Sequence record: LR756500.1
Direction: 5' to 3' (one strand)
Length of the DNA stretch: 64,000 bases
The notes below the pieces were generated by a model. It had not been told where the DNA came from and did not search any database. It was given only the letters and a program-made list of their open reading frames with translations. How positions within the stretch are numbered: position 1 is the stretch's first letter; the number at the start of each line of letters is the position of its first letter. Both the position numbers and the translations under genes were made by a program. This document shows, piece after piece, positions 2,690 to 62,753 of this stretch.

Positions 2690-2990
2690 GCTCGTGTTAT
2701 ACAGAGCTGTACATGTACTTATCAATAAGTTAGGAATATAAGAAATGCTTGTTGGTGCAAGTTAAGTAGTGTTTCGGATCTGATTGTCTGACAAACAAAT
2801 TAAAGAAAGACTGATCCGTTTAATACTTTTGGGATTTTTTATTAAATTTATAAATAATTATGGCTTCCGAGCAGTATTTTCTGTGCCGGAAGGATTTTAA
2901 TTAGGGAAAACAGGTACATGATACATTTTAAATATGTACGTTGGTGCAAGTTAAGTTGTTGTTTTCGTCTGAAGTACCGATTTACATACA
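2690..2990. other. Non-coding structured region with a 17-bp direct repeat and several hairpins
   Basis: gttggtgcaagttaagt at 2751 and 2940; stems cggatc/gatccg, ttccg-gcag/ctg-gccggaa, gtacat/atgtac. Confidence 0.45.
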
Positions 2991-3063
2991 TTATAAAGTA
3001 TTTAAAAGAATATTTTTACTTTTAAATTTTTGTTATTAAATTTAATATATTAAAATAATAACA

Positions 3064-3270
3064 ATGAAAATTTGGAAAGATAATAAAGACTATATAATTG
3101 TTACTAGCAATAAAAGATTATACACTCTAATAGGAACTCCAAATGGATATCAATTGCAAAATCATAATTCAAGAGTAAATGATGATTGGGCTCCTTCAAA
3201 AGGTACTTTATTAAAGAATATTCCTAACAAAATTAAACGTAAAGTGTTTAAATTAAATAAAAATACTTAA
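3064..3270 (+). CDS. hypothetical protein
   Basis: 68-aa ORF with A-rich leader. Confidence 0.65.
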   Translation: MKIWKDNKDYIIVTSNKRLYTLIGTPNGYQLQNHNSRVNDDWAPSKGTLLKNIPNKIKRKVFKLNKNT

Positions 3271-3351
3271 AATCTTATTTTTTTATTTAAAACTTTGTTA
3301 TTATATTTATTTAATTAATTAATATTTATACACTTATAAAATTTTAAAGCT

Positions 3352-4041
3352 ATGGAATTAAAAGACTTAGTAGAATTAAGACAAATTGGACTATCATTAG
3401 TCGATAAAACAACAGAATTAATCAAAAAAGAAGTAGAAGGTGGAAAAGTATCAGAAGATACTCTTTTTGATTTATTACATAATTCGTTTAAAAAATTAAC
3501 ACCTGTTAAAGAAACAAAGAAAAAAGAACAAAAGGTTAAAAAAGAACAAAATATTGAAAAAGTTTTTAATACAAATACTCTCACAGGTGCAATACAAGAA
3601 ATTTTAACTAAAACAAATCCTGATACAGAATTTGATATTAATACAATTGATGAAACTGTTAAATCATTCTTTCCAAATTTAGAATTTAATAAATCATCTA
3701 TTCAAAAAATTCTTTCTAGATTAAAAGATAAACAAATTCTAATAAGAGTTAGAAGCGGTTTTTACAAAGCTAATACTAATCCTATTATCGAAAAAGCTAA
3801 AAAACCTAAAGAAGAAACAACTAAAGTTATTGTACCTACAACTATTAGAGACAAAGTATTAAAATTAATGCCGGAATCAAATGTAGCAATTGATGTACAA
3901 ATGATTTTTGAAAAACTTAAAAAGCATTATCCTAACAAAAAATATAGCATTAACTCATTATATCCTCAATTAACATTCTTAGTACAAGATAATCTTCTTA
4001 AAAGAATTAAAGCTGGTTTATATGCACGAGTTAAAGCATAA
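3352..4041 (+). CDS. putative DNA-binding protein with two winged-helix-like repeats
   Basis: Two similar units ending LIRVRSGFYK and LKRIKAGLYAR; follows promoter motif at 3298. Confidence 0.55.
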   Translation: MELKDLVELRQIGLSLVDKTTELIKKEVEGGKVSEDTLFDLLHNSFKKLTPVKETKKKEQKVKKEQNIEKVFNTNTLTGAIQEILTKTNPDTEFDINTIDETVKSFFPNLEFNKSSIQKILSRLKDKQILIRVRSGFYKANTNPIIEKAKKPKEETTKVIVPTTIRDKVLKLMPESNVAIDVQMIFEKLKKHYPNKKYSINSLYPQLTFLVQDNLLKRIKAGLYARVKA

Positions 4042-36879: not shown

Positions 36880-37989
36880 TTATTTAACTATTAATTTTTT
36901 TCTAAATATTGCATTTTTATTAGTTGCAATTACAATATATTGTCCAATAGGTATTCTTTCATGTGGATCTATAGCTTCAATTATATCATTCGTAAATCCT
37001 GTAATAATTATTTTTGAATATAATTCTTGTCCTAATTCATTAATAACAACCACCATAATTTCTTCAGCACTAGAATGACTTATATGTATAAATAATGATT
37101 CATCTACATCTTTAGGATTAGGATAAATATCAAAAGAAAAAGGTTGTTCATATATTATGTATTTAGTATCAAAATATTTATAAAATCCATTTTTATCTAC
37201 TTGTTTTAATCTATAATAATTTATTCCATTTGTTGGATTTATATCATATATTGAATATTCAATATTTTCATTAGAATTGCCCACAGCAAAAACAATATCA
37301 AGCATATTAAAATTAATAAGATTATTTGATTTTTCTATAATAAATAAATCTGTATTAATTTCAGATGATGTAGCCCAATCTATTTTAACTTCATTATCTA
37401 TTAAACTTACTTCAAAATTTAATAATTCAATTGGTAAAGTATTTACTATTATGCTATCAGTAATAACAACAGAACCTGAAATAGTAATAGGATCAATTCC
37501 CATTATACAACAACTACCTGATACAGAACTTGCAATTATTGTTCCATTACCATTTATGTCTGCTCCTACTCCATTATTAATATTACCAGTTACAAATAAA
37601 TTTCCATTAATTGTTATATTATTTGAATTATTGTTATTTATTAAATCATTTAAAATAATAAGAGTTGCACCTTCATCTATTATAACTATACATCCATTAT
37701 TAAATTGAATATTTTGTACAACTAATATACCACAACCTATTATATGTAATGAACATTGAGATCCAATTATTAATGTTCCTCTACATTCTGCATTTATTGA
37801 ATCTGTTCCAGATATAGTTATTGTATCTTTAGAGGGATCAGGTATTCCATGATCCCATGTTCCAGTAATACACCAATTTCCATCCTTTATAGATGTTGTA
37901 TGTTTAGCAATGGCTTTAAGATAATTATCTTGACTTGATACACTTAAACTTAATAAACAAAATAATAAAGTTAAAATTAATTTTATCAT
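36880..37989 (-). CDS. secreted protein with a T9SS type-A C-terminal sorting domain
   Basis: Sec signal peptide; LPIELLNF...W.TSSE.N...YYRLKQVD domain; IYPNP...GQ...G.Y...KKLIVK. Confidence 0.85.
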   Translation of the reverse strand: MIKLILTLLFCLLSLSVSSQDNYLKAIAKHTTSIKDGNWCITGTWDHGIPDPSKDTITISGTDSINAECRGTLIIGSQCSLHIIGCGILVVQNIQFNNGCIVIIDEGATLIILNDLINNNNSNNITINGNLFVTGNINNGVGADINGNGTIIASSVSGSCCIMGIDPITISGSVVITDSIIVNTLPIELLNFEVSLIDNEVKIDWATSSEINTDLFIIEKSNNLINFNMLDIVFAVGNSNENIEYSIYDINPTNGINYYRLKQVDKNGFYKYFDTKYIIYEQPFSFDIYPNPKDVDESLFIHISHSSAEEIMVVVINELGQELYSKIIITGFTNDIIEAIDPHERIPIGQYIVIATNKNAIFRKKLIVK

Positions 37990-38280: not shown

Positions 38281-38511
38281 TTATTTTTCTTCAATATATT
38301 TATCTATTATACTAAAAGCGTATACTCCATAATAAATAGTACAAAATATTAATATTAATACTACTGTAAATAATGATGGAAACAATGTTAATCCTATAGA
38401 TGAACATATAACAAATGATATAAAACCAGTAAAAGTAAAAAGTATAAAAAACGCAATAATTAATGAAACAATAATTATTGAATTAACTAAAAAATTAAAA
38501 TCTTTATTCAT
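38281..38511 (-). CDS. small membrane protein
   Basis: Almost entirely hydrophobic, 76 aa. Confidence 0.65.
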   Translation of the reverse strand: MNKDFNFLVNSIIIVSLIIAFFILFTFTGFISFVICSSIGLTLFPSLFTVVLILIFCTIYYGVYAFSIIDKYIEEK

Positions 38512-38522
38512 ATTTAAAATTA

Positions 38523-38864
38523 TTAAATTAGAGAATCATATATAATATTTCCTGCTATTTCTAAATTATTGTTTTTATTTATGCCCGCAATAATATCTTC
38601 ATTTTTATTATATGCGCACATGTGGAAATTTTCGTTTTCGTAATCCATTGCAAAATCTTCAGACAATTTATCTGATATTAATAATTCATTATTTAATCCA
38701 ATTGCACATAAAATATCTCCAGATTCAATGTTAAATGCATATTGAGTATATTTACTTAAATAACTTTCTAAAAAATTACCGTCAAATTCTTTTTCAAGTA
38801 ATTGTTCTAAAACTTTAATTATATTTTCTGCATCATTTATATTTCTTATAATTGCTATTTTCAT
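38523..38864 (-). CDS. hypothetical protein
   Basis: 113-aa ORF. Confidence 0.7.
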   Translation of the reverse strand: MKIAIIRNINDAENIIKVLEQLLEKEFDGNFLESYLSKYTQYAFNIESGDILCAIGLNNELLISDKLSEDFAMDYENENFHMCAYNKNEDIIAGINKNNNLEIAGNIIYDSLI

Positions 38865-38865
38865 A

Positions 38866-39939
38866 TTATAATAAGTTTGTTGCCATTTCTGCCAATGGAC
38901 TTCTTTCTCCTTTTAATAAATTAATATGAGTAAACATAGGTTGACCCTTTAATTTGTGAATTAAATAAGTTAATCCGTTAGAGTGTTTATCTAAATAAGG
39001 AGAATCAATTTGAAATATATCTCCAGTAAAAACAAATTTTGCTCCCTGACCAGCTCTAGTTATAATAGTTTTAACTTCATGAGGAGTTAAATTTTGAGCT
39101 TCATCAATAATAAAATAAGTATTAGCTAAACTACGTCCTCGTATATATGCTAAAGGTGTTATAATTAATTTATCATTTTTTTGTAATTCCTCTATTTGTC
39201 GTAGTTCATTACTGCCCTTACTAAAATTGTATTTTATAACACCTAAATTATCAAATAATGGTTGCATATAAGGAGCAATTTTTTCATTAACATCACCTGG
39301 TAAAAATCCTATGTCTCTATTAGCTAATGGAACAATAGGTCTTGCTAACATTATTGATGCATATTTATTAGATTGCTCTAAAGCAGCGGTAAGTGCCAGA
39401 AGGGTTTTACCAGTATTATGTGAACTTATTCCATCTCCACCCCAATATCTATGATTTTCATGCAATACTTCAAAATCATATACCTCACTATCCTTTAATT
39501 TTTTTATTTCTTTAATTTCACTCCATCCATCTTTAGTATAAATAGCATCACCTATATTTAAATTTTCAGTTTTTTCCCAGCCTAATCTTTTTTCTAATAA
39601 ATGATCAAATGAACATTTTATAGAAAGCTTATTTGATGTTAGTATTTTAAAACATTCTCTTTTTGATTTTTTATAAAAATCACCAATCTCTTGATATCCA
39701 TCAGGCGTATCAATTAATATCATATTAGAAATATTAGAATTATAAAGGGTTTCAATTTCTATAATTTCACTATAATTACGTATATGTTCATTAAAAAATG
39801 CATTTATTTCTTTTTCATAATATTTACTTATCTCATTAATAGATATATCATCAGTAATATTTAAAACTTTTCGAATTTCAATGACATTATAATATTCTAA
39901 TAATTCTTCTATTTTTTCTTCTATTTTTAAATTCATCAT
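38866..39939 (-). CDS. phoH: split-intein C-fragment (175 aa) fused to the PhoH C-terminal half
   Basis: Intein blocks [15 protein letters not shown] and SSHN (N at 39415-17), followed by TGKTLLAL...RGRSL...IIDEAQN...GDIFQID. Confidence 0.9.
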
Positions 39940-41179
39940 GTATAATTTTTGTTATTTTTTTAATTGTATTAAATATATTATCACTATCCCAAATAATTAA
40001 TACATTTTTATTATTATTAATAGCAATATTTTGTTTATAAATATCTTTTTTAAAAATCACTTCTGCATCTTCTTTTGAATATAAATGTCTCCAATTATTC
40101 CATTCATTTATTGATAATTTTTCTTTATTAGGATGAATATGACTTCCATTATATTCAATAATTATATCTAAATCTTTTATATAAAAATCGTAAAAATATA
40201 TTTTTTTAGTTTCTTGATCATATATAAAATATTCATTCTCTTTATACATATATTCAAACTCTATTCCATAATCTTTCTTACATATTTCTATTAACTTATC
40301 AAAAAATATAATAGATGATTTAGAATAAAATTTATTTTTCCAAGCTTTAATTTTTTTGTTTAAAATTTCTATTTTTTCTTCATCGGATTTATTATTTAAT
40401 GTTTGCTGCCATTTATCTTGTCTTTTTTTCCATACTAAATATCCTTCTTGTTTTCCATACTTTTCTATACATTTTTCTAAACTAAATGTACTTTGTCTTT
40501 CTGATAAAGCTTTATATGCTTCTAATAAACTTAAACCTTTATTTAAAAAATGTTGTAAAGTAGTAGGATAAATATATGTTCTCTCTCCACTAACTTTATA
40601 TCTTTTTATAGCTTCAGCTCCTTTACTTTGTTTATTATAAATTTTTTCTTTAGCTTCTTCATCAGTATATAAGTTATTAGTTATAGGATTAATTTTATTT
40701 AAATAAAATTCCCATCTATTACTATTACCAAACGATTTTTTAATTTCATCATAATTTTTTTTATTTTTAGTTGTTACATATTTTTTATTGTATATTTCTT
40801 TTTGTACTTTTATAGCTTCATATATTGATATATTTCGTTTTTTAGATATATTTTTAATAGAAATATTTCCTTGACGATTTTTAATCAATAGTTTAGTTTC
40901 AAGTTCAGACCAACCTCTATTTAAATAATATTCATTAGAAGTATTTGAATTTGGACCATATCCTAATAAAGTATTTGTTATTTTAGTTTTTAAATTAATA
41001 TTATTAAATATTTCTAAATATAAATCATATTTTATTTTTAAATTTTCTGTATTATAAGTATTAATGTGTTTTATATTTTGTTTTATAATATCACAATATT
41101 TATTAAAATTTAGTGGTTCATTTAATAATATAAAATTTCTTTTTTCTTTAATTTTTTTAAATAATAAATTTAAACTCAT
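39887..41179 (-). mobile_element. free-standing Vsr-like/PD-(D/E)XK homing endonuclease between the phoH halves
   Basis: YFYDFYIKDLDIIIEYNGSHIHP...VLIIWD C-terminal nuclease; helical YY..RGW N-terminal region. Confidence 0.75.
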
Positions 41180-41225
41180 AATATATTTTTATTTTATATA
41201 TTATGAGTTTAAATTTATTATCCAG

Positions 41226-42128
41226 CTATTCCTGTTGATTTTTACTATTAATTTTATTTTTTGATTTCATTTTATATATTTTAATTTTTTCATCTGGATA
41301 TAAACATCCTGCTTTTCCAGTTAATACTATTAAAGGACAATCATTATTTAATAAAGCATGCATTGCAAAAGATTGTTCTGCATTTTTAGGTTCAATTCCA
41401 AATATTTTTTTCTTATCTATTTTAATAAGTTTATCTGTATTTTTATCGTAATATGCTAATGCACTAGATGTATCACATTTTAAAATAAAATATTCGTTAG
41501 ACTGCGGATAATCACTTTCAGTAAAACCTAAATCAACAGGACTTAATCCTTTAGGTGTAACATATAATTTATCTATATTATCAGCAGTCAATTGTTTTAA
41601 AATATCTGCTTGTTTATCAACTATATTTGTATCTTCAATTTTTCCGGCTTTATAATCTTCTGCATCTATACCTAATGATAAAGCTTTCATTCTTAGATTA
41701 ATATCTTGACTTACTAGTATTACCTTTTTAGGTATATAATTTTTGTTTATTAATCCATTTGAATCATATTCAGCATATTGTTCTTTTAATTTACTAGCAA
41801 TAGCAAGTATTCTATGATCTGCGGTTTTCTCTGGAAAAGATGTTGACAAATCATCATTAAAAGGAGCTCCTTTAACTATAAATAATTTTCCTAATCTTTC
41901 TCCTAAAACTATTCCTTCTTTAAAGTTTCCAAGCTCAGCTAATTTATTAAGTTCACGTACAAATTCTCTGGCATGAAAATTTATAGTTTCTGAACCCTTT
42001 TTAAATTTATCTAATTCTTCTAAAACTACTATAGGTATAACTACATCGTTATCTCTAAAATTATATATACATTTATAATCATATAATAGAACATTTGTAT
42101 CTAACACTAAAATTTTATTCATTTTCAA
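41226..42128 (-). CDS. phoH: PIN-PhoH N-terminal half fused to a short split-intein N-fragment (26 aa)
   Basis: VLDTNV...VLEELD...ADHRIL...SQDINLR PIN domain; ends VLTGKAG-CLYPDEKIKI (Cys at 41304-06). Confidence 0.9.
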   Translation of the reverse strand: MKMNKILVLDTNVLLYDYKCIYNFRDNDVVIPIVVLEELDKFKKGSETINFHAREFVRELNKLAELGNFKEGIVLGERLGKLFIVKGAPFNDDLSTSFPEKTADHRILAIASKLKEQYAEYDSNGLINKNYIPKKVILVSQDINLRMKALSLGIDAEDYKAGKIEDTNIVDKQADILKQLTADNIDKLYVTPKGLSPVDLGFTESDYPQSNEYFILKCDTSSALAYYDKNTDKLIKIDKKKIFGIEPKNAEQSFAMHALLNNDCPLIVLTGKAGCLYPDEKIKIYKMKSKNKINSKNQQE

Positions 42129-42432
42129 TTTTTTTAACTTTTAAATGTATTTCTGTTAATATAGGACCTTTTAATTTTGCATTAAAATATAATCTATCTC
42201 CAATATCGGGGATTACTATTTTAATAATTTTATAAGAAGCATTTTTAAATTTAAGAATTTCATCTACAGATATAAATGGTCCTCCATCAAAATCTATAAA
42301 ACCGATACTTCCATCTTCTAAAGAACCATATCTATTAAAATGAGTAAGACCTGATAAAACTACAGTATAATCAGAAATTAATTCAAATTTTCGATTATCA
42401 CCATATCTAGATATTATATCTATTACATTCAT
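42115..42432 (-). CDS. hypothetical protein
   Basis: 105-aa ORF. Confidence 0.7.
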   Translation of the reverse strand: MNVIDIISRYGDNRKFELISDYTVVLSGLTHFNRYGSLEDGSIGFIDFDGGPFISVDEILKFKNASYKIIKIVIPDIGDRLYFNAKLKGPILTEIHLKVKKIENE

Positions 42433-42623
42433 ACTTTAGTAATTTTTAAATTATCGTCTTGTTTAAAGACTTTATAACAACCTTGATCTGTTTTTTTAGT
42501 ATATTGTGTACCATTATGTGTCTGAGTGTTCCAAAATTTATCTGCATCTTCCTTTGATAAATTTTTTTTAATTATAATCCAACGTTTATCGCATTTATCA
42601 TAAAATTTAACACAATATTTCAT
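42429..42623 (-). CDS. hypothetical protein
   Basis: 64-aa ORF. Confidence 0.6.
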   Translation of the reverse strand: MKYCVKFYDKCDKRWIIIKKNLSKEDADKFWNTQTHNGTQYTKKTDQGCYKVFKQDDNLKITKV

Positions 42624-58851: not shown

Positions 58852-59058
58852 ATTTAATTCTATATGCAAATATAATAATATAGTTTAAAATTTAAAAATA
58901 AATAACTCATTATTTGTTTAATAAAAGTTTAACTTTTAAATAAAAATTATAAATTTCTTTAATTTCTATTTCATTGTAATCTTCAGGAACTGAATTTTTA
59001 CCCATAGCATAATTTGCTAAAAAAATTTTAAATCCAGTTTTTTGGTATTCAATATTCA

Positions 59059-59271
59059 TTATTTATTATCTAATTTTTTATTTGCAATTGCTTTTTTAAT
59101 TAACACAGCGCCTTCATAGTTTTCATGAGCAATATTTATTTCAAGTAATTCTTCTAATTGTTCTAAATCAAATAACATAATGTCATCATCAGTAAATTCC
59201 ATTTCAAAATATTTTCCACCATCATTTCCTAAAAAGCCATGTTCTTCCATAAAATTTTCTAGTGCATTCAT
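59059..59271 (-). CDS. small acidic protein with a UVR motif
   Basis: AHENYEGAVLIKK. Confidence 0.65.
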   Translation of the reverse strand: MNALENFMEEHGFLGNDGGKYFEMEFTDDDIMLFDLEQLEELLEINIAHENYEGAVLIKKAIANKKLDNK

Positions 59272-59322
59272 ATAAGATATTTTTATTTATATATCACCGC
59301 GACTAATTAAAATGCAAAATTA

Positions 59323-59649
59323 TTACTCTTCGTTATCGATATCTTTTTGAGTTTTTGTTTCAAATTTAACTCTTAATCCTTTAAGGTGAGCAAACATATC
59401 AACAAAAATTACATCTTTAAGTTTACTTATAATATTATTTGCTTCTTTTTTATCTATATTATAAATTGATAATCTTTTAACTTTACCAATATATTTAAAA
59501 TCAGAATTTTGTTTATGATATATTATTAAATGCTTAGTGTCACTATCATAAACAAACATAGCATCTTTATTTTCATAAGATGAAATAGATCCATAAGTTG
59601 GTCCAAATTCTTCAAATATTTCGTAAGGTAATAATTTATTAGTTAACAT
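59323..59649 (-). CDS. hypothetical protein
   Basis: 108-aa ORF. Confidence 0.65.
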   Translation of the reverse strand: MLTNKLLPYEIFEEFGPTYGSISSYENKDAMFVYDSDTKHLIIYHKQNSDFKYIGKVKRLSIYNIDKKEANNIISKLKDVIFVDMFAHLKGLRVKFETKTQKDIDNEE

Positions 59650-59659
59650 ACTTTTTATT

Positions 59660-59863
59660 TTATTTATCCCTTAAAGAAATATTTTCTAATTTAACATGTT
59701 GAATAGGAAATCTATCAACAATAGCACATAATCCCCAGCTCGGAAAAAATTTATTATAACCTAAAAAATCTAAAGTTCCCCCTATGGTTTGATTTTTGTC
59801 TGTAGTATTTTTTATTAAAACTTTCTTATTAAGAAATTTATTCTGGGCTTCCTGTAATGTCAT
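59660..59863 (-). CDS. hypothetical protein
   Basis: 67-aa ORF. Confidence 0.6.
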   Translation of the reverse strand: MTLQEAQNKFLNKKVLIKNTTDKNQTIGGTLDFLGYNKFFPSWGLCAIVDRFPIQHVKLENISLRDK

Positions 59864-60341
59864 TTGCTTCTTTTATTATTCGTTCTCTTTCTAATCTAGC
59901 TGCTTTTAATTCTTCATTTGATTTCCATTCATAATTAGCATCTATATCTTTAGAACATTTTTCGCATTTTACCATATACCATCTTGATGTGGTTCTACCT
60001 ATATTTTCTTTAGATCCGCAATCTTCACATGTTTCAAAAGATTCATTTTCAGCTGCATTTATTAATTCATAAATATAATCATCTCCATGATCTATATAAA
60101 ATCTTAAGCCTCCAAATTTTTCTTTTATTTGATGAAGTGTAACCATAAATTTTTCATCTTCAGGTTTATTATCTAAATATGTTTTTATATTTAACATTAA
60201 TTTATCTAATATATCATACCAACCATCATTACATTCCATACCAAATAATTTAATAGAATGCATAGGGCCTTCTTCTCTTTTTAATTCACCAAAAAATTCT
60301 GGATATTTTTCTATAAGTTTTAATTCTAATTCTTCTTTCAT
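59838..60341 (-). CDS. conserved phage hypothetical protein with a Zn-ribbon
   Basis: QIKEKFGGLRFY...CEDCG...CEKC. Confidence 0.75.
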   Translation of the reverse strand: MKEELELKLIEKYPEFFGELKREEGPMHSIKLFGMECNDGWYDILDKLMLNIKTYLDNKPEDEKFMVTLHQIKEKFGGLRFYIDHGDDYIYELINAAENESFETCEDCGSKENIGRTTSRWYMVKCEKCSKDIDANYEWKSNEELKAARLERERIIKEANDITGSPE

Positions 60342-60342
60342 T

Positions 60343-60669
60343 TTAAAATAATGGATTAAGTGGATAATATTTTTGTATATATTTTAATAAAATTTGTCCA
60401 TGACATATTAATTTATCATCATCTTTATATTCGATACATTCAGTACAATAACATCCTAATGTTTTATTTTTTAAACTTTCTAATTTATTAAATAATATTT
60501 GATTATTTAATAAATATTTTTCATATTCTATAATGGCTTCTTTAACTGAATCTACTTTATATTTAGCAAGTGTTCCTTCTTTATGACTGAACGGATTACC
60601 CCATATCGAGGGTCTTCCTATATAAACATCGTAATTAGATTTTTTAATATTTACTAATTTAGCCATCAA
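60343..60669 (-). CDS. DUF4326 family protein
   Basis: YIGRPSIWGNPF...LGCYC...CHGQIL. Confidence 0.8.
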   Translation of the reverse strand: MMAKLVNIKKSNYDVYIGRPSIWGNPFSHKEGTLAKYKVDSVKEAIIEYEKYLLNNQILFNKLESLKNKTLGCYCTECIEYKDDDKLICHGQILLKYIQKYYPLNPLF

Positions 60670-61069
60670 AATATGTTTTTTCTATATCATTACAATTAAT
60701 CAAATGTAACATGTCGTAAAGTTGCATATCTACTAATAAAGCTTTTCCACCATTTCTATTAATCATTTCTACTTCATCCCACATATCATCAAAGTGTAAA
60801 TCAAAACCTCCTCTAGCATATTCACCTTGTTTAAATGCTCCATTAGTATATATAACTTTATTCTTTGGAATTTCAAGATATTTAATTACTTGATATAAAT
60901 CACTATTTTGACTTGACGTTCCTAGTATAGCACCGTTTTCATCTCTTATATAATCATCTTGTCTACTAGTTAACACCCAAACATCAGCTCCAGCTTTAAT
61001 TAAAAGCTTAGCTAACTCTCTAATATGAGGTTCTGATAATGTCATATCGTAATCAAATGATATTTTCAT
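60659..61069 (-). CDS. HAD-like protein
   Basis: ISFDYDMTL, LTSR and LHFDD. Confidence 0.65.
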   Translation of the reverse strand: MKISFDYDMTLSEPHIRELAKLLIKAGADVWVLTSRQDDYIRDENGAILGTSSQNSDLYQVIKYLEIPKNKVIYTNGAFKQGEYARGGFDLHFDDMWDEVEMINRNGGKALLVDMQLYDMLHLINCNDIEKTYFDG

Positions 61070-61097
61070 AATATTATATGAATATTGGAAATTTTGT

Positions 61098-61415
61098 TTA
61101 AAAATATTTAAAAAAATTATACAACTTTCTAGATTTAAGATAATTTAAATTTGTATCATTTAAATATGCTTCCTTTTCAAACGATATATTATAATATCCT
61201 TTAGTATAAAATTCTATTAAATAGATAATATAAAAGGGAATTACTAATAATTCTAATTGTTGAGTTAAATGTATACGTTCGTGATTAATTAATTCCTTTG
61301 TTATTTTTGTATTCTTAGATAAAAATATAAATGGCCATATTGTAATTGCATCTGCATCCATATTACCTACAAAGAAGCAAAAAAACTTTAACCACTTGTC
61401 ACTAATTATTATCAT
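61098..61415 (-). CDS. zincin-like (HExxH) small protein
   Basis: AITIWPFI...HERIH..QQ...Y..ISFEKEAY; the track start overlaps a tRNA, ATG at 61415 preferred. Confidence 0.7.
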   Translation of the reverse strand: MIIISDKWLKFFCFFVGNMDADAITIWPFIFLSKNTKITKELINHERIHLTQQLELLVIPFYIIYLIEFYTKGYYNISFEKEAYLNDTNLNYLKSRKLYNFFKYF

Positions 61416-61428
61416 ATGTTTATATTTG

Positions 61429-61500
61429 AGCGAGATATCAGGATTGAACTGACGGCCCTTGGTTTGGAAAACCAATGCTCTACCACTGAGCTAATCTCGC
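61429..61500 (-). tRNA. trnG: tRNA-Gly (TCC), no encoded CCA
   Basis: Cloverleaf: GCGAGAT/ATCTCGC acceptor, TTGGT-TTTCCAA-ACCAA anticodon arm, TTCAATC T-loop. Confidence 0.9.
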
Positions 61501-61507
61501 ATTTTAA

Positions 61508-62089
61508 TTAACTAATTAAAACATCATATAATAAATTAATTTGATATTCTAAATCTTCTTTTAATCCATTATTATAAATAACATAATCAGAATTTTTAAC
61601 TCTATAAATATCTGTAATTTGTTGTTTATTAATTCTTTTAATAACATCTTCTCTTGTACAATTATTTCTCTTTATTACTCTTTCTATTCTTTTTTCTATT
61701 GGTGAAACAACAGATATCATTTTATTATAAGAATCTTCATCATTTTTTTCGAATATAATTGCATTTTCGATAATTACAAATGGCTTTTTTTGTATTTTAC
61801 ACCAATAATCTATTTCTAATTCTACATAAGGATGAATTATTCTTTCAATTTTATAAAGTTTATCGTTATCATTAAAAATAATAGAAGCTACTTTTTCTCT
61901 ATTTAAACTTTTATCTGGGAAATAAACATCACCTAATAAATCAATAACTTTTTCTTTAATAGCATCATTTAAATATGCATCTCTTGCAATTTGATCTGCA
62001 TTTAATACTGGAACACCTAATTTTGAAAATAAAAAAGCTACAGTACTTTTACCTGCACCTATACCACCTGTTAAACCTATTTTTGCCAT
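61508..62089 (-). CDS. coaE: dephospho-CoA kinase
   Basis: IGLTGGIGAGKS, LNADQIAR, IIHPYV and RVIKRN; ATG at 62089. Confidence 0.92.
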   Translation of the reverse strand: MAKIGLTGGIGAGKSTVAFLFSKLGVPVLNADQIARDAYLNDAIKEKVIDLLGDVYFPDKSLNREKVASIIFNDNDKLYKIERIIHPYVELEIDYWCKIQKKPFVIIENAIIFEKNDEDSYNKMISVVSPIEKRIERVIKRNNCTREDVIKRINKQQITDIYRVKNSDYVIYNNGLKEDLEYQINLLYDVLIS

Positions 62090-62111
62090 ATTAAATCTAT
62101 TTAAAAATTTG

Positions 62112-62185
62112 AGCCTCCAGTAGGATTCGAACCCACGGCCCTCTCGGTACAAACGAGATGCTCCGACCAACTGAGCTATAGAGGC
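62112..62185 (-). tRNA. trnT: tRNA-Thr (TGT), no encoded CCA
   Basis: GCCTCTA/TGGAGGC acceptor, TCTCG-TTTGTAC-CGAGA anticodon arm, GGTTCGAATCC. Confidence 0.92.
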
Positions 62186-62187
62186 AT

Positions 62188-62225
62188 TGGAGCGGGCTCG
62201 GCGATTCAACCGAGGATCATCCCGC
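62188..62225 (-). ncRNA. tRNA-Gly-like minihelix (acceptor and T-arm only, with CCA)
   Basis: GCGGGATGATCCTCGGTTGAATCGCCGAGCCCGCTCCA. Confidence 0.55.
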
Positions 62226-62237
62226 ATATTTTATTAG

Positions 62238-62309
62238 AGCGAGATATCAGAATTAAACTGACGACCTGAACATTGGCAATGTTCCGCTCTATCACTGAGC
62301 TAATCTCGC
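62238..62309 (-). tRNA. trnG: tRNA-Gly (GCC) with atypical T-loop TTTAATT, no CCA
   Basis: GCGAGAT/ATCTCGC acceptor, GAACA-TTGCCAA-TGTTC anticodon arm. Confidence 0.85.
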
Positions 62310-62447
62310 ATTGTGTAGTTTTTGTAATATCCCCTGAACTACTAACAGTGCTAACCTATGATTTAGAGAACAGTTGCGCATTATTAAGAGGCAGTTCATA
62401 TCTTCGATCCATTATAGTGCACCATAAGAGGGCTAATTTCTAAATTG

Positions 62448-62519
62448 TTGTCTCTCACTGAGTCGAACAGTGATTTTTAGATCCAAATTCTAATATAATA
62501 ACCATTATATCAAGAGACA
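62448..62519 (-). tRNA. trnQ: tRNA-Gln (TTG), AT-rich, no CCA
   Basis: TGTCTCT/AGAGACA acceptor, TTAGA-ATTTGGA-TCTAA anticodon arm, CACTG-TTCGACT-CAGTG T-arm. Confidence 0.8.
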
Positions 62520-62529
62520 ATTTAAAATG

Positions 62530-62580
62530 CGTAATAAAATAAAACAACGTTTCAACATGTTTCAATTTTATTTTATTACG
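62530..62580. repeat. 15-bp perfect inverted repeat between tRNAs
   Basis: cgtaataaaataaaa (62530-44) / ttttattttattacg (62566-80). Confidence 0.85.
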
Positions 62581-62673
62581 ACTATATAACAATAAGCAGC
62601 TGACTACTAATTTCAGCATGTCTCCGTTTAAATTATCACTAACCCTAGGTGTAGAGAACTTATTATTACATTG

Positions 62674-62753
62674 TGGAATCGGAGGGATTCGAACCCCCAA
62701 GTCTTTCGAGCCTGATCTACAGTCAGGTAGGCCACCAATTGCCCAACAATTCC
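62674..62753 (-). tRNA. trnY: tRNA-Tyr (GTA), no CCA
   Basis: GGAATTG/CGATTCC acceptor, CCTGA-CTGTAGA-TCAGG anticodon arm, long variable arm, GGTTCGAATCC. Confidence 0.92.

Follow-up and report, generated by a model that had tools for sequence, protein, structure and literature searches.

How could a phage obtain an intact PhoH ATPase from a gene that is broken in the middle of its nucleotide-binding P-loop? The question is raised by a locus in LR756500.1, an unannotated 462-kb 'uncultured phage' record of groundwater metagenome origin, whose first 64 kb are the stretch analysed here (the window). The gene for a PhoH2 protein with a PIN domain (PIN-PhoH2; phoH) is present there in two pieces, with a third open reading frame (ORF) between them. 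We find that the locus is a genuine fractured PIN-PhoH2 gene with a VidaL-family split intein, split at site S1 (Cys1/Thr+1), and a free-standing Vsr-like homing endonuclease. We consider it likely that the two phoH halves are joined by trans-splicing of this class 1 split intein, a cassette with the endonuclease in the Walker A codons making this a fractured gene.

The phoH gene is fractured inside its Walker A motif

The upstream piece (N gene) reads ...PLIVLTGKAG, runs on directly into the 26-amino-acid (aa) sequence CLYPDEKIKIYKMKSKNKINSKNQQE, the N-terminal half of the intein (IntN), which opens with CLYPDEKIKIYK, and then ends in a stop codon. The downstream piece (C gene) begins with the 175 residues of the C-terminal intein half (IntC), ending in ...GISSHN, and continues with TGKTLLAL.... 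On the NCBIfam PhoH2 model NF053827, the N piece occupies positions 2-248 and the C piece positions 247-423, so that the two abut exactly at 247/248, and each piece alone scores below the 680-bit equivalog cut-off of the model, as expected for halves. The PHROG family phrog_2765 also matches both pieces (the C piece at 262-442), in agreement with the picture given by the PhoH2 model; the PIN domain PF13638 was found on the N gene, and the host portion of the C gene (C-extein) matched the PhoH structure 3b85 in the PDB at an E-value of 1.7e-27. A contiguous PIN-PhoH2 of 441 aa (locus L008; MT838184.1) can be aligned to the N piece as far as residue 274 (44% identity to the N-extein over residues 5-274) and to the C piece from the Thr to the last residue. 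Because both pieces are collinear with this contiguous protein, the phoH break falls exactly within Walker A, and ligation would restore GKAGTGKT. The acidic residues of the PIN domain, both Walker A halves (GKAG and TGKT) and the Walker B motif IIDEAQN are all intact.

The initial annotation had placed the fracture inside Walker A, and the ORF coordinates, the PhoH2 model positions and the L008 alignment agree with it; its counts (a 26-aa IntN, a 175-aa IntC ending in SSHN before TGKT, a middle ORF of 430 aa and a product of 456 aa) were correct throughout. The last figure is the sum of the N-extein (274 aa) and the C-extein (182 aa) when the N gene starts at the TTG at 42128, and becomes 454 aa if the ATG at 42122, chosen in the database gene call P0179, is the true start. 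The N gene, the endonuclease gene and the C gene share one orientation, but each is read in a frame of its own from a separate start to a separate stop, and no stops or frameshifts interrupt the phoH pieces. The locus therefore shows the features of a fractured gene: adjacent, co-oriented ORFs that encode consecutive parts of one protein, a split intein, and an endonuclease ORF between its halves. A second phoH copy was not found by tblastn in the 429-kb genome, leaving the fractured gene as the sole copy. A search for further PIN-PhoH2 N-halves ending in an IntN like that of phoH returned, among close relatives, only contiguous PhoH2 proteins of 440-463 aa.

The two halves carry an atypically split intein of the VidaL family

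A phmmer search of the PDB matched IntC residues 60-178 to VidaL (6vgv; E = 2.2e-18) and to gp41-1 (E = 3.5e-07), and the intein C-terminal motif TIGR01443 scored 18.7 bits on IntC against a cut-off of 15.6, a similarity that chance would not produce. The AlphaFold2 (AF2) model of IntC (predicted local distance difference test, pLDDT, of 84.9) was matched to 6vgv by Foldseek (E = 6.8e-10, TMt 0.72, root mean square deviation (rmsd) 1.8 Å, 38% identity); its HINT fold gave 61 PDB matches at E ≤0.001, and the top 50 listed were all intein, bacterial intein-like (BIL) or hedgehog HINT domains, with 6vgv the best. Across 16 aligned relatives, the IntC columns P79, D80, G81, K91, S110, H113, D155, H160, N162 and H163 were invariant and S172, S173, H174 and N175 nearly so. 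The residues that define a class 1 intein are all present, namely Cys1 (C275 of the N gene), S110-x-x-H113, D155/H160, H174-N175 and Thr+1 (T176 of the C gene).

The N gene holds block A only, and the C gene has blocks B, F and G; helix alpha1 lies at IntC residues 62-66, and the alignment with VidaL starts at IntC residue 60. This is the atypical split site S1, a type of split in which IntN has about 15-37 aa and contains block A alone. In the fractured genes of Dassa and colleagues most inteins are reportedly split at the canonical site between blocks B and F, whereas the phoH intein is split after block A. The IntN core of about 14 aa is conserved over six loci in three host genes, and the pattern C-L-x-x-[DNS]-[EQ]-[KR]-[IV]-x-[IV]-Y-x-[MLI]-K is common to the N genes of the related loci L001, L004, L005, L006 and L007 (described below). 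The tails that follow it in the relatives range from 1 to 17 variable aa, and in L004 and L006 the tail-coding DNA overlaps the start of the endonuclease gene. We read the 12-aa tail of phoH as read-through into the cassette, though the complex model described below places it against IntC. An atypical split site had been proposed at the outset and is confirmed by this distribution of blocks, and the Thr in position +1 is seen both at the phoH locus and in most relatives. The two lengths stood in part only: IntN does have 26 aa, but its conserved core covers only about 14, the last 12 being variable tail, and IntC does have 175 aa, but some 57 of these form an extra helical module that is not part of the HINT fold.

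The helices of this module lie at IntC residues 6-14, 19-25, 34-40 and 42-56 (predicted pLDDT 77-92). About 35 relatives conserve the extension, L13 and F49 being present in at least 90% and H52 in most of them, and it is retained in loci without an endonuclease; VidaL- and PA5oct-type IntCs are without it. A profile search of 1.84 billion representative proteins found it solely at the N-termini of IntC-type sequences. The same profile gave only chance-level matches in the PDB, and the ESM Atlas returned weak helix-turn-helix-like look-alikes (TM 0.47-0.55), which we did not treat as evidence. We rejected M72 as an alternative start of IntC, because the similarity to VidaL takes in residues 58-71, and because relatives that without exception begin at the corresponding Met conserve residues 1-57. 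The positions of all features are collected in Table 1.

Table 1. Positions of the genes, intein parts and nucleotide features of the phoH locus in the window.
Feature	Position	Strand	Size and content
N gene (PIN-PhoH N-part + IntN)	41226-42128	minus	300 aa; 298 aa if ATG at 42122
N-extein	41307..42128	minus	274 aa from TTG, 272 aa from ATG; PIN domain and N-terminal PhoH ATPase to first Walker A half (…LTGKAG)
IntN core	41265..41306	minus	CLYPDEKIKIYKMK (14 aa); Cys1 and HINT strands beta1-beta2, split site S1; shared with N genes of relatives
IntN tail	41226..41264	minus	SKNKINSKNQQE (12 aa) and TAG stop; length and sequence vary in relatives
Perfect 29-bp RNA hairpin	41158..41224	minus	covers the N gene-endonuclease spacer (46 nt); 3' arm holds the endonuclease AUG (41177-41179)
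Endonuclease gene, free-standing (putative homing endonuclease)	39887..41179	minus	430 aa; helical N-terminal region (presumed DNA binding) and C-terminal Vsr-like catalytic domain
Vsr-like catalytic domain	39905..40333	minus	endonuclease residues 283-425
Overlap of endonuclease 3' end and IntC gene start	39887..39939	minus	53 nt, different frames
C gene (IntC + PhoH C-part)	38866-39939	minus	357 aa
IntC helical extension	39769..39939	minus	residues 1-57; four helices outside the HINT fold
IntC HINT core	39415..39768	minus	residues 58-175; helix alpha1, block B (S110-F-D-H113), block F, block G (GISSH174-N175)
C-extein	38866..39414	minus	182 aa and stop; Thr+1, second Walker A half (TGKT…), Walker B IIDEAQN, rest of PhoH ATPase

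IntN is predicted to complete the HINT fold of IntC

We predicted the complex of IntC residues 1-190 with N-gene residues 258-300, alongside three controls. The median score of the IntN-IntC pair was 0.85, in comparison to 0.01 for the best control; in a benchmark, 51 of 78 solved complexes and 2 of 108 mismatched pairs scored as high as 0.85. The runs shared at least 77% of their contacts, and the pLDDT of the partner was at least 56. The tightest contacts, which also had the lowest predicted error, joined N-gene residues 276-287 to IntC residues 59-63, 73-76, 96, 108-109 and 154, which are the strands and the block B and F residues expected to be contacted in a completed HINT fold. The modelling thus supports a specific association of IntN with IntC.

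The helical extension of IntC touches IntN in the same model. We entertain, as a speculation with the odds against it, that the extension, possibly together with the IntN tail, is a new accessory domain of a large split-intein subfamily with ultra-short IntN; it might serve as the intein's own clamp or chaperone, covering the beta1-beta2 groove while this is empty and catching the 14-aa IntN, or else as a switch that makes PhoH2 assembly conditional in infection. If so, this subfamily would be a source of Cys1/Thr+1 inteins that are naturally optimised and have an IntN of peptide size.

The middle ORF encodes a Vsr-like endonuclease

The protein encoded between the intein halves has 192 database homologues, several of which are named very-short-patch-repair endonuclease or carry PF04480/PF18741, and is matched by phrog_22677. 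Its kinship with Vsr emerged only from a profile search and a second look with VIA-align: phmmer gave no match in the PDB or NCBIfam, and Foldseek with the whole 430-aa model gave none at E ≤0.001. When a profile of 34 relatives was compared with the PDB, all five matches were Vsr-fold nucleases (E 0.015-0.14). The AF2 model (pLDDT 86.7) shows a long helical N-terminal region followed by a C-terminal alpha/beta domain, and VIA-align of residues 283-418 returned the Escherichia coli Vsr structures 1cw0_A (Z 9.7, rmsd 3.4, 114 residues aligned) and 1vsr (Z 9.1), as well as the catalytic domain of I-Bth0305I, 3r3p_A (Z 9.3, rmsd 2.8, 95 of 97 residues); the domain also aligns with the Vsr-like domain of AbaSI. 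In the catalytic domain, conservation is complete at D331 and E342 and reaches at least 90% at H349, D379 and K382. The description of the middle ORF as Vsr-like is upheld by the VIA-align Z scores and by a PDB profile search that matched Vsr folds exclusively. Site-specific cleavage and homing by the putative endonuclease are presumed.

Hairpin, gene overlap and integrity of the locus

Both accessory nucleotide features of fractured genes are present at phoH: a hairpin at the 5' end of the endonuclease gene and an overlap at its 3' end. The hairpin has a folding free energy of -28.9 kcal/mol (z -10.5), and none of 200 shuffled sequences was as stable. Of 16 loci studied by Dassa et al. (2009; PMC2677866), 15 had a hairpin ahead of the endonuclease start, for which they proposed attenuation of endonuclease translation; overlaps of 6-69 bp were reported in 15 loci. 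Overlaps also occur in L001 (44 nt) and L002 (41 nt). When the sequences around the endonuclease starts of L001, L004 and L006 were folded, z values from -1.9 to +0.4 were obtained; that of Pseudomonas phage PA5oct, the sole clear counterpart among the relatives checked, gave -3.0.

A very stable hairpin placed exactly between the N gene and the endonuclease could also be taken as a sign that the frames are joined at the RNA level or during translation, by an intron, ribosomal bypass or frameshift, so that a contiguous intein-endonuclease precursor is made and the split is merely apparent. In the same direction point the endonuclease of L003, which is in frame with IntC, and the 53-nt overlap at phoH, which holds A-rich runs. 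Yet an Rfam scan of positions 38500-42500 at E ≤1 returned no family, group I and II introns included, and the three ORFs occupy three frames with starts and stops of their own. Moreover, relatives differ in spacing and overlap or have no endonuclease (L005, L007), and nevertheless encode N and C parts in separate genes; in L003, too, the N gene is separate. Joining of this kind is extremely unlikely.

The DNA of the phoH locus has 22% G+C and many homopolymer runs, and in such AT-rich sequence an unbroken phoH with an intein could in principle look split through frameshift errors. The locus is, however, reproduced in full, with 0 differences and 0 gaps at a depth of about 50, in a 20-kb contig of a public re-assembly of the likely source sample, and fragments from a second sample match it exactly across the IntN stop and the start of the endonuclease gene. 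Unrelated samples and the cultured phage PA5oct also show the three-gene layout. An assembly or sequencing artefact is almost certainly not the explanation. The absence of an Rfam match, the separate genes of the relatives and the reproduced assembly are our reasons for setting aside RNA joining, recoding and assembly error.

Trans-splicing would restore the PhoH2 P-loop

From sequence and models we infer the chemistry and efficiency of splicing, the activity and target of the endonuclease, and the regulation by the hairpin. The IntN hairpin would dock on a pre-formed IntC and complete the HINT horseshoe; Cys1 would undergo an N-S acyl shift, aided by Ser110 and His113 of block B, and the thioester would be handed to the hydroxyl of Thr+1. 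Asn175 would then cyclise with the help of His174, and an O-N shift would leave a Gly274-Thr peptide bond, the product being a PhoH2 of 456 aa whose GKAGTGKT P-loop is intact. The endonuclease would presumably cut intein-less phoH genes of co-infecting relatives, by which the cassette spreads, and the 29-bp hairpin, which buries the AUG, would presumably hold down endonuclease translation.

Several points weigh against this proposal. None of the RNA runs searched for the phoH locus contains it. Thr+1 inteins are often slower than Cys+1 or Ser+1 inteins. The IntC extension could modulate or even hinder splicing. The complex prediction shows likeness to a working split intein rather than activity, because the VidaL structure is solved and perhaps partly remembered. 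A phmmer search of the PDB with the IntN tail region gave only a chance match (E 1.5), with a query too short to inform. As to the hairpin, we do not claim it as a family feature and propose its regulatory role with little confidence, because it is absent in most relatives checked.

Some of these points could also be taken to mean that phoH is a dead gene, that is, that the endonuclease cassette broke phoH, that the intein halves are non-splicing relics and that the phage is without functional PhoH2. Thr+1 and the unusual 57-aa insertion at the N-terminus of IntC could compromise activity, no RNA run contains the locus, and huge phages carry many dispensable genes. The decay expected of a pseudogene is disfavoured, because the catalytic intein residues and the extein motifs are intact and phoH is single-copy; in addition, the pieces are free of stops and frameshifts, the IntN core is conserved over six loci in three host genes, and the predicted IntN-IntC interface is a confident one. 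We therefore regard a dead gene as unlikely.

The same interface would unite the halves with or without chemistry, and IntN-IntC association might just hold the PhoH2 pieces together non-covalently, with no ligation. Against this, the break lies in mid P-loop (GKAG/TGKT), which needs a continuous loop to bind nucleotide, about 200 intein residues would occupy the active site, and the conservation of N175, H174, C1 and Thr+1 is explicable by splicing chemistry only. Purely non-covalent assembly is, in our judgement, very unlikely, and trans-splicing is the reading that we retain.

The intein family occupies one P-loop position in several host genes

The IntC family comprised 49 database clusters at E ≤0.001, always inserted before a P-loop (T/S/C)GK(T/S); its hosts include RecA/UvsX, PhoH (P0005 in L001, P0006 in L002), DnaB, an AAA ATPase and others. 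At this P-loop position phoH (L001, L002), uvsX/recA (L004, L006 and L009, the last from phage PA5oct) and dnaB are divided, in every case into an N gene and a C gene. At least three other metagenomic loci (L001, L002 and L003) have phoH fractured at the same site, and P0046 is a contiguous version of the intein in a RecA-type host. The related loci show the gene-breaking stages of Dassa et al. at one insertion site, from contiguous intein through endonuclease-IntC fusion and free-standing endonuclease to endonuclease loss.

In L001 (392-4293; JGI 3300077562), a short-form phoH is in three pieces, with ...GPAG/CLINSEKIKIYKLKE at the end of the N part (a 15-aa IntN), a Vsr-like endonuclease and an overlapping IntC-PhoH gene. 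A second intein, which is canonically split (DN/CMHPDTVI... and ...LSKN/SIVIIDETQN), lies before Walker B in the same locus, with a GIY-YIG endonuclease gene at 2733-4037. The fractured-phoH contig of L002 (1835-4687; SRR8925819) also contains a fractured family B DNA polymerase with a canonical split intein and a 382-aa Vsr-like endonuclease ORF between the halves. L003 (260-2930; SRR23702477) is a higher-G+C PIN-PhoH2 in which a more distant intein, with Cys+1, interrupts the P-loop at the same point; its Vsr-like endonuclease is fused in frame to IntC-PhoH (604 aa), the N gene is separate, and the 30-aa IntN takes in helix alpha1, which makes it an S2-type split. L005 (869-2496) and L007 (2747-4776) are RecA/UvsX-type genes with an intein of the same subfamily as that of phoH in the window and adjacent N and C genes without an endonuclease between them, which looks like the stage of endonuclease loss.

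One related locus comes from a cultured jumbo phage: in Pseudomonas phage PA5oct (L009, 1263-4269; NC_071039.1, gp276/gp275/gp274), uvsX is fractured by a VidaL-like split intein. Its IntN has 17 aa (CLPETAKVKIRLSKKQS) and its IntC lacks the extension; the Vsr-like endonuclease (477 aa) is listed as a hypothetical protein, and the intein is unannotated in the record.

Two further fractures were observed in the phage of the window itself, both on the minus strand of the 429-kb contig and outside the window. At 425877-428599, a topoisomerase-like N part of 179 aa has at its end a canonical IntN, block B included, and is followed by a 300-aa Vsr-like endonuclease ORF and by an IntC (...VVHN/S) fused to a 410-aa C part. 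At 58856-62454, a ribonucleotide-reductase-like N part (423 aa) with a canonical IntN is followed by a 376-aa Vsr-like endonuclease ORF and by an IntC (...VSHN/T) fused to a 390-aa C part. One phage thus holds three fractures with intein and endonuclease, and in phoH only is the split atypical.

Relation to described inteins and fractured genes

The closest solved relative of the IntC core is VidaL (PDB 6vgv/6vgw), with which the phoH intein shares the S1 split before helix alpha1, Cys1, block G (SSHN/VSHN) and insertion in the P-loop just before (S/T)GK. VidaL has a 16-aa IntN and is split after beta2, which is the S1 site, as is the PolB16 OarG intein (PMC13014065). The two differ in host, phoH as opposed to the recombinase/helicase-type gene of VidaL, and in the +1 residue, Thr in place of the Ser of VidaL, an exchange whose kinetic effect (Ser+1 to Thr) has been compared (PMC13014065). 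They differ also in the 12-aa IntN tail and the 57-aa helical module of IntC, and the phoH intein is known from sequence and models.

A very short IntN, a long IntC and an origin in phage or metagenome DNA are further shared with AceL-TerL (25 aa), GOS-TerL, TerL CAT (30 aa) and PolB16 OarG (PMC10189870, PMC13014065). PolB16 OarG consists of 15 + 168 aa (PMC10189870), and its 168-aa IntC is a precedent for an IntC of about 170 aa. The TerL inteins, in contrast, are split after helix alpha1 (S2), PolB16 has Ser1/Ser+1 and no sequence match to the phoH IntC at E ≤1, and none of the TerL and PolB16 inteins is in phoH.

In its overall arrangement the locus resembles the fractured genes of Dassa et al. 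(2009; PMC2677866), with a co-oriented N gene, Vsr-like endonuclease and C gene, a hairpin, an overlap and a phage origin; the main text of that paper contains no occurrence of phoH. The endonuclease resembles I-Bth0305I (3r3p), which its profile matched at E 0.036, in having a multi-helix N-terminal region and a C-terminal nuclease and in being mobile in phage DNA-metabolism genes. I-Bth0305I is, however, encoded in a group I intron of a phage recA, whereas the phoH endonuclease is free-standing between intein halves, and the two are 18% identical.

Contiguous inteins in bacterial PhoH share the host family, the P-loop NTPase PhoH. Twenty-one are described from Actinobacteria and Deinococcus-Thermus (PMC4760082), and PhoH inteins of class 3, with mycobacterial examples, are also on record (PMC6195587). 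Unlike these contiguous, bacterial, class 3 inteins with their WCT triplet, the phoH intein is a split intein of a phage; it resembles class 1 in its Cys1 and block B His, shows no evidence of a WCT triplet, and has its endonuclease in a separate gene. In the literature searched we found no paper on a split intein or fractured gene in phoH, and within that literature phoH is a new host for a split intein, in an arrangement that is itself known. The initial annotation, too, had not counted phoH among the described hosts of a split intein with an endonuclease, and our search agrees, the described PhoH inteins being only contiguous; the fracture has no prior description that we found, but is not unique, since L001, L002 and L003 share the site.

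Naturally split inteins with a peptide-sized IntN are rare, and the papers searched name five that are characterised (AceL-TerL, GOS-TerL, TerL CAT, VidaL and PolB16). Short-IntN split inteins are sought for semisynthetic protein labelling because IntN can be obtained by peptide synthesis. The phoH locus and its approximately 35 database relatives form an uncharacterised branch of the VidaL family, with a 14-aa IntN core, Cys1/Thr+1 and an extra IntC module, and this branch is a ready candidate source of such inteins that may be orthogonal to existing ones. With PhoH2, an RNA helicase/RNase, the locus also takes fractured genes beyond the enzymes of DNA metabolism. Its interest is moderate for phage biology and practical for engineers who want short-IntN inteins.

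Genomic surroundings

The copy of the genome that we analysed is one 429-kb contig with 24% G+C. Apparent 'joints' to other contigs were 20-23-letter matches in AT-rich DNA, and were rejected as not real. Neighbouring genes include rIIA, rIIB and further phage genes. On the minus strand at 36880-37989 of the window lies a 369-aa ORF whose N-terminus is signal-peptide-like; its C-terminal region, inspected by eye, looks like a type IX secretion sorting domain of Bacteroidota, which may hint at the host phylum of this huge phage. Clusters of tRNA genes are common in huge phages, and a cluster of five (Gly-TCC, Thr-TGT, Gly-GCC, Gln-TTG and Tyr-GTA) was observed on the minus strand at 61428-62753 of the window.

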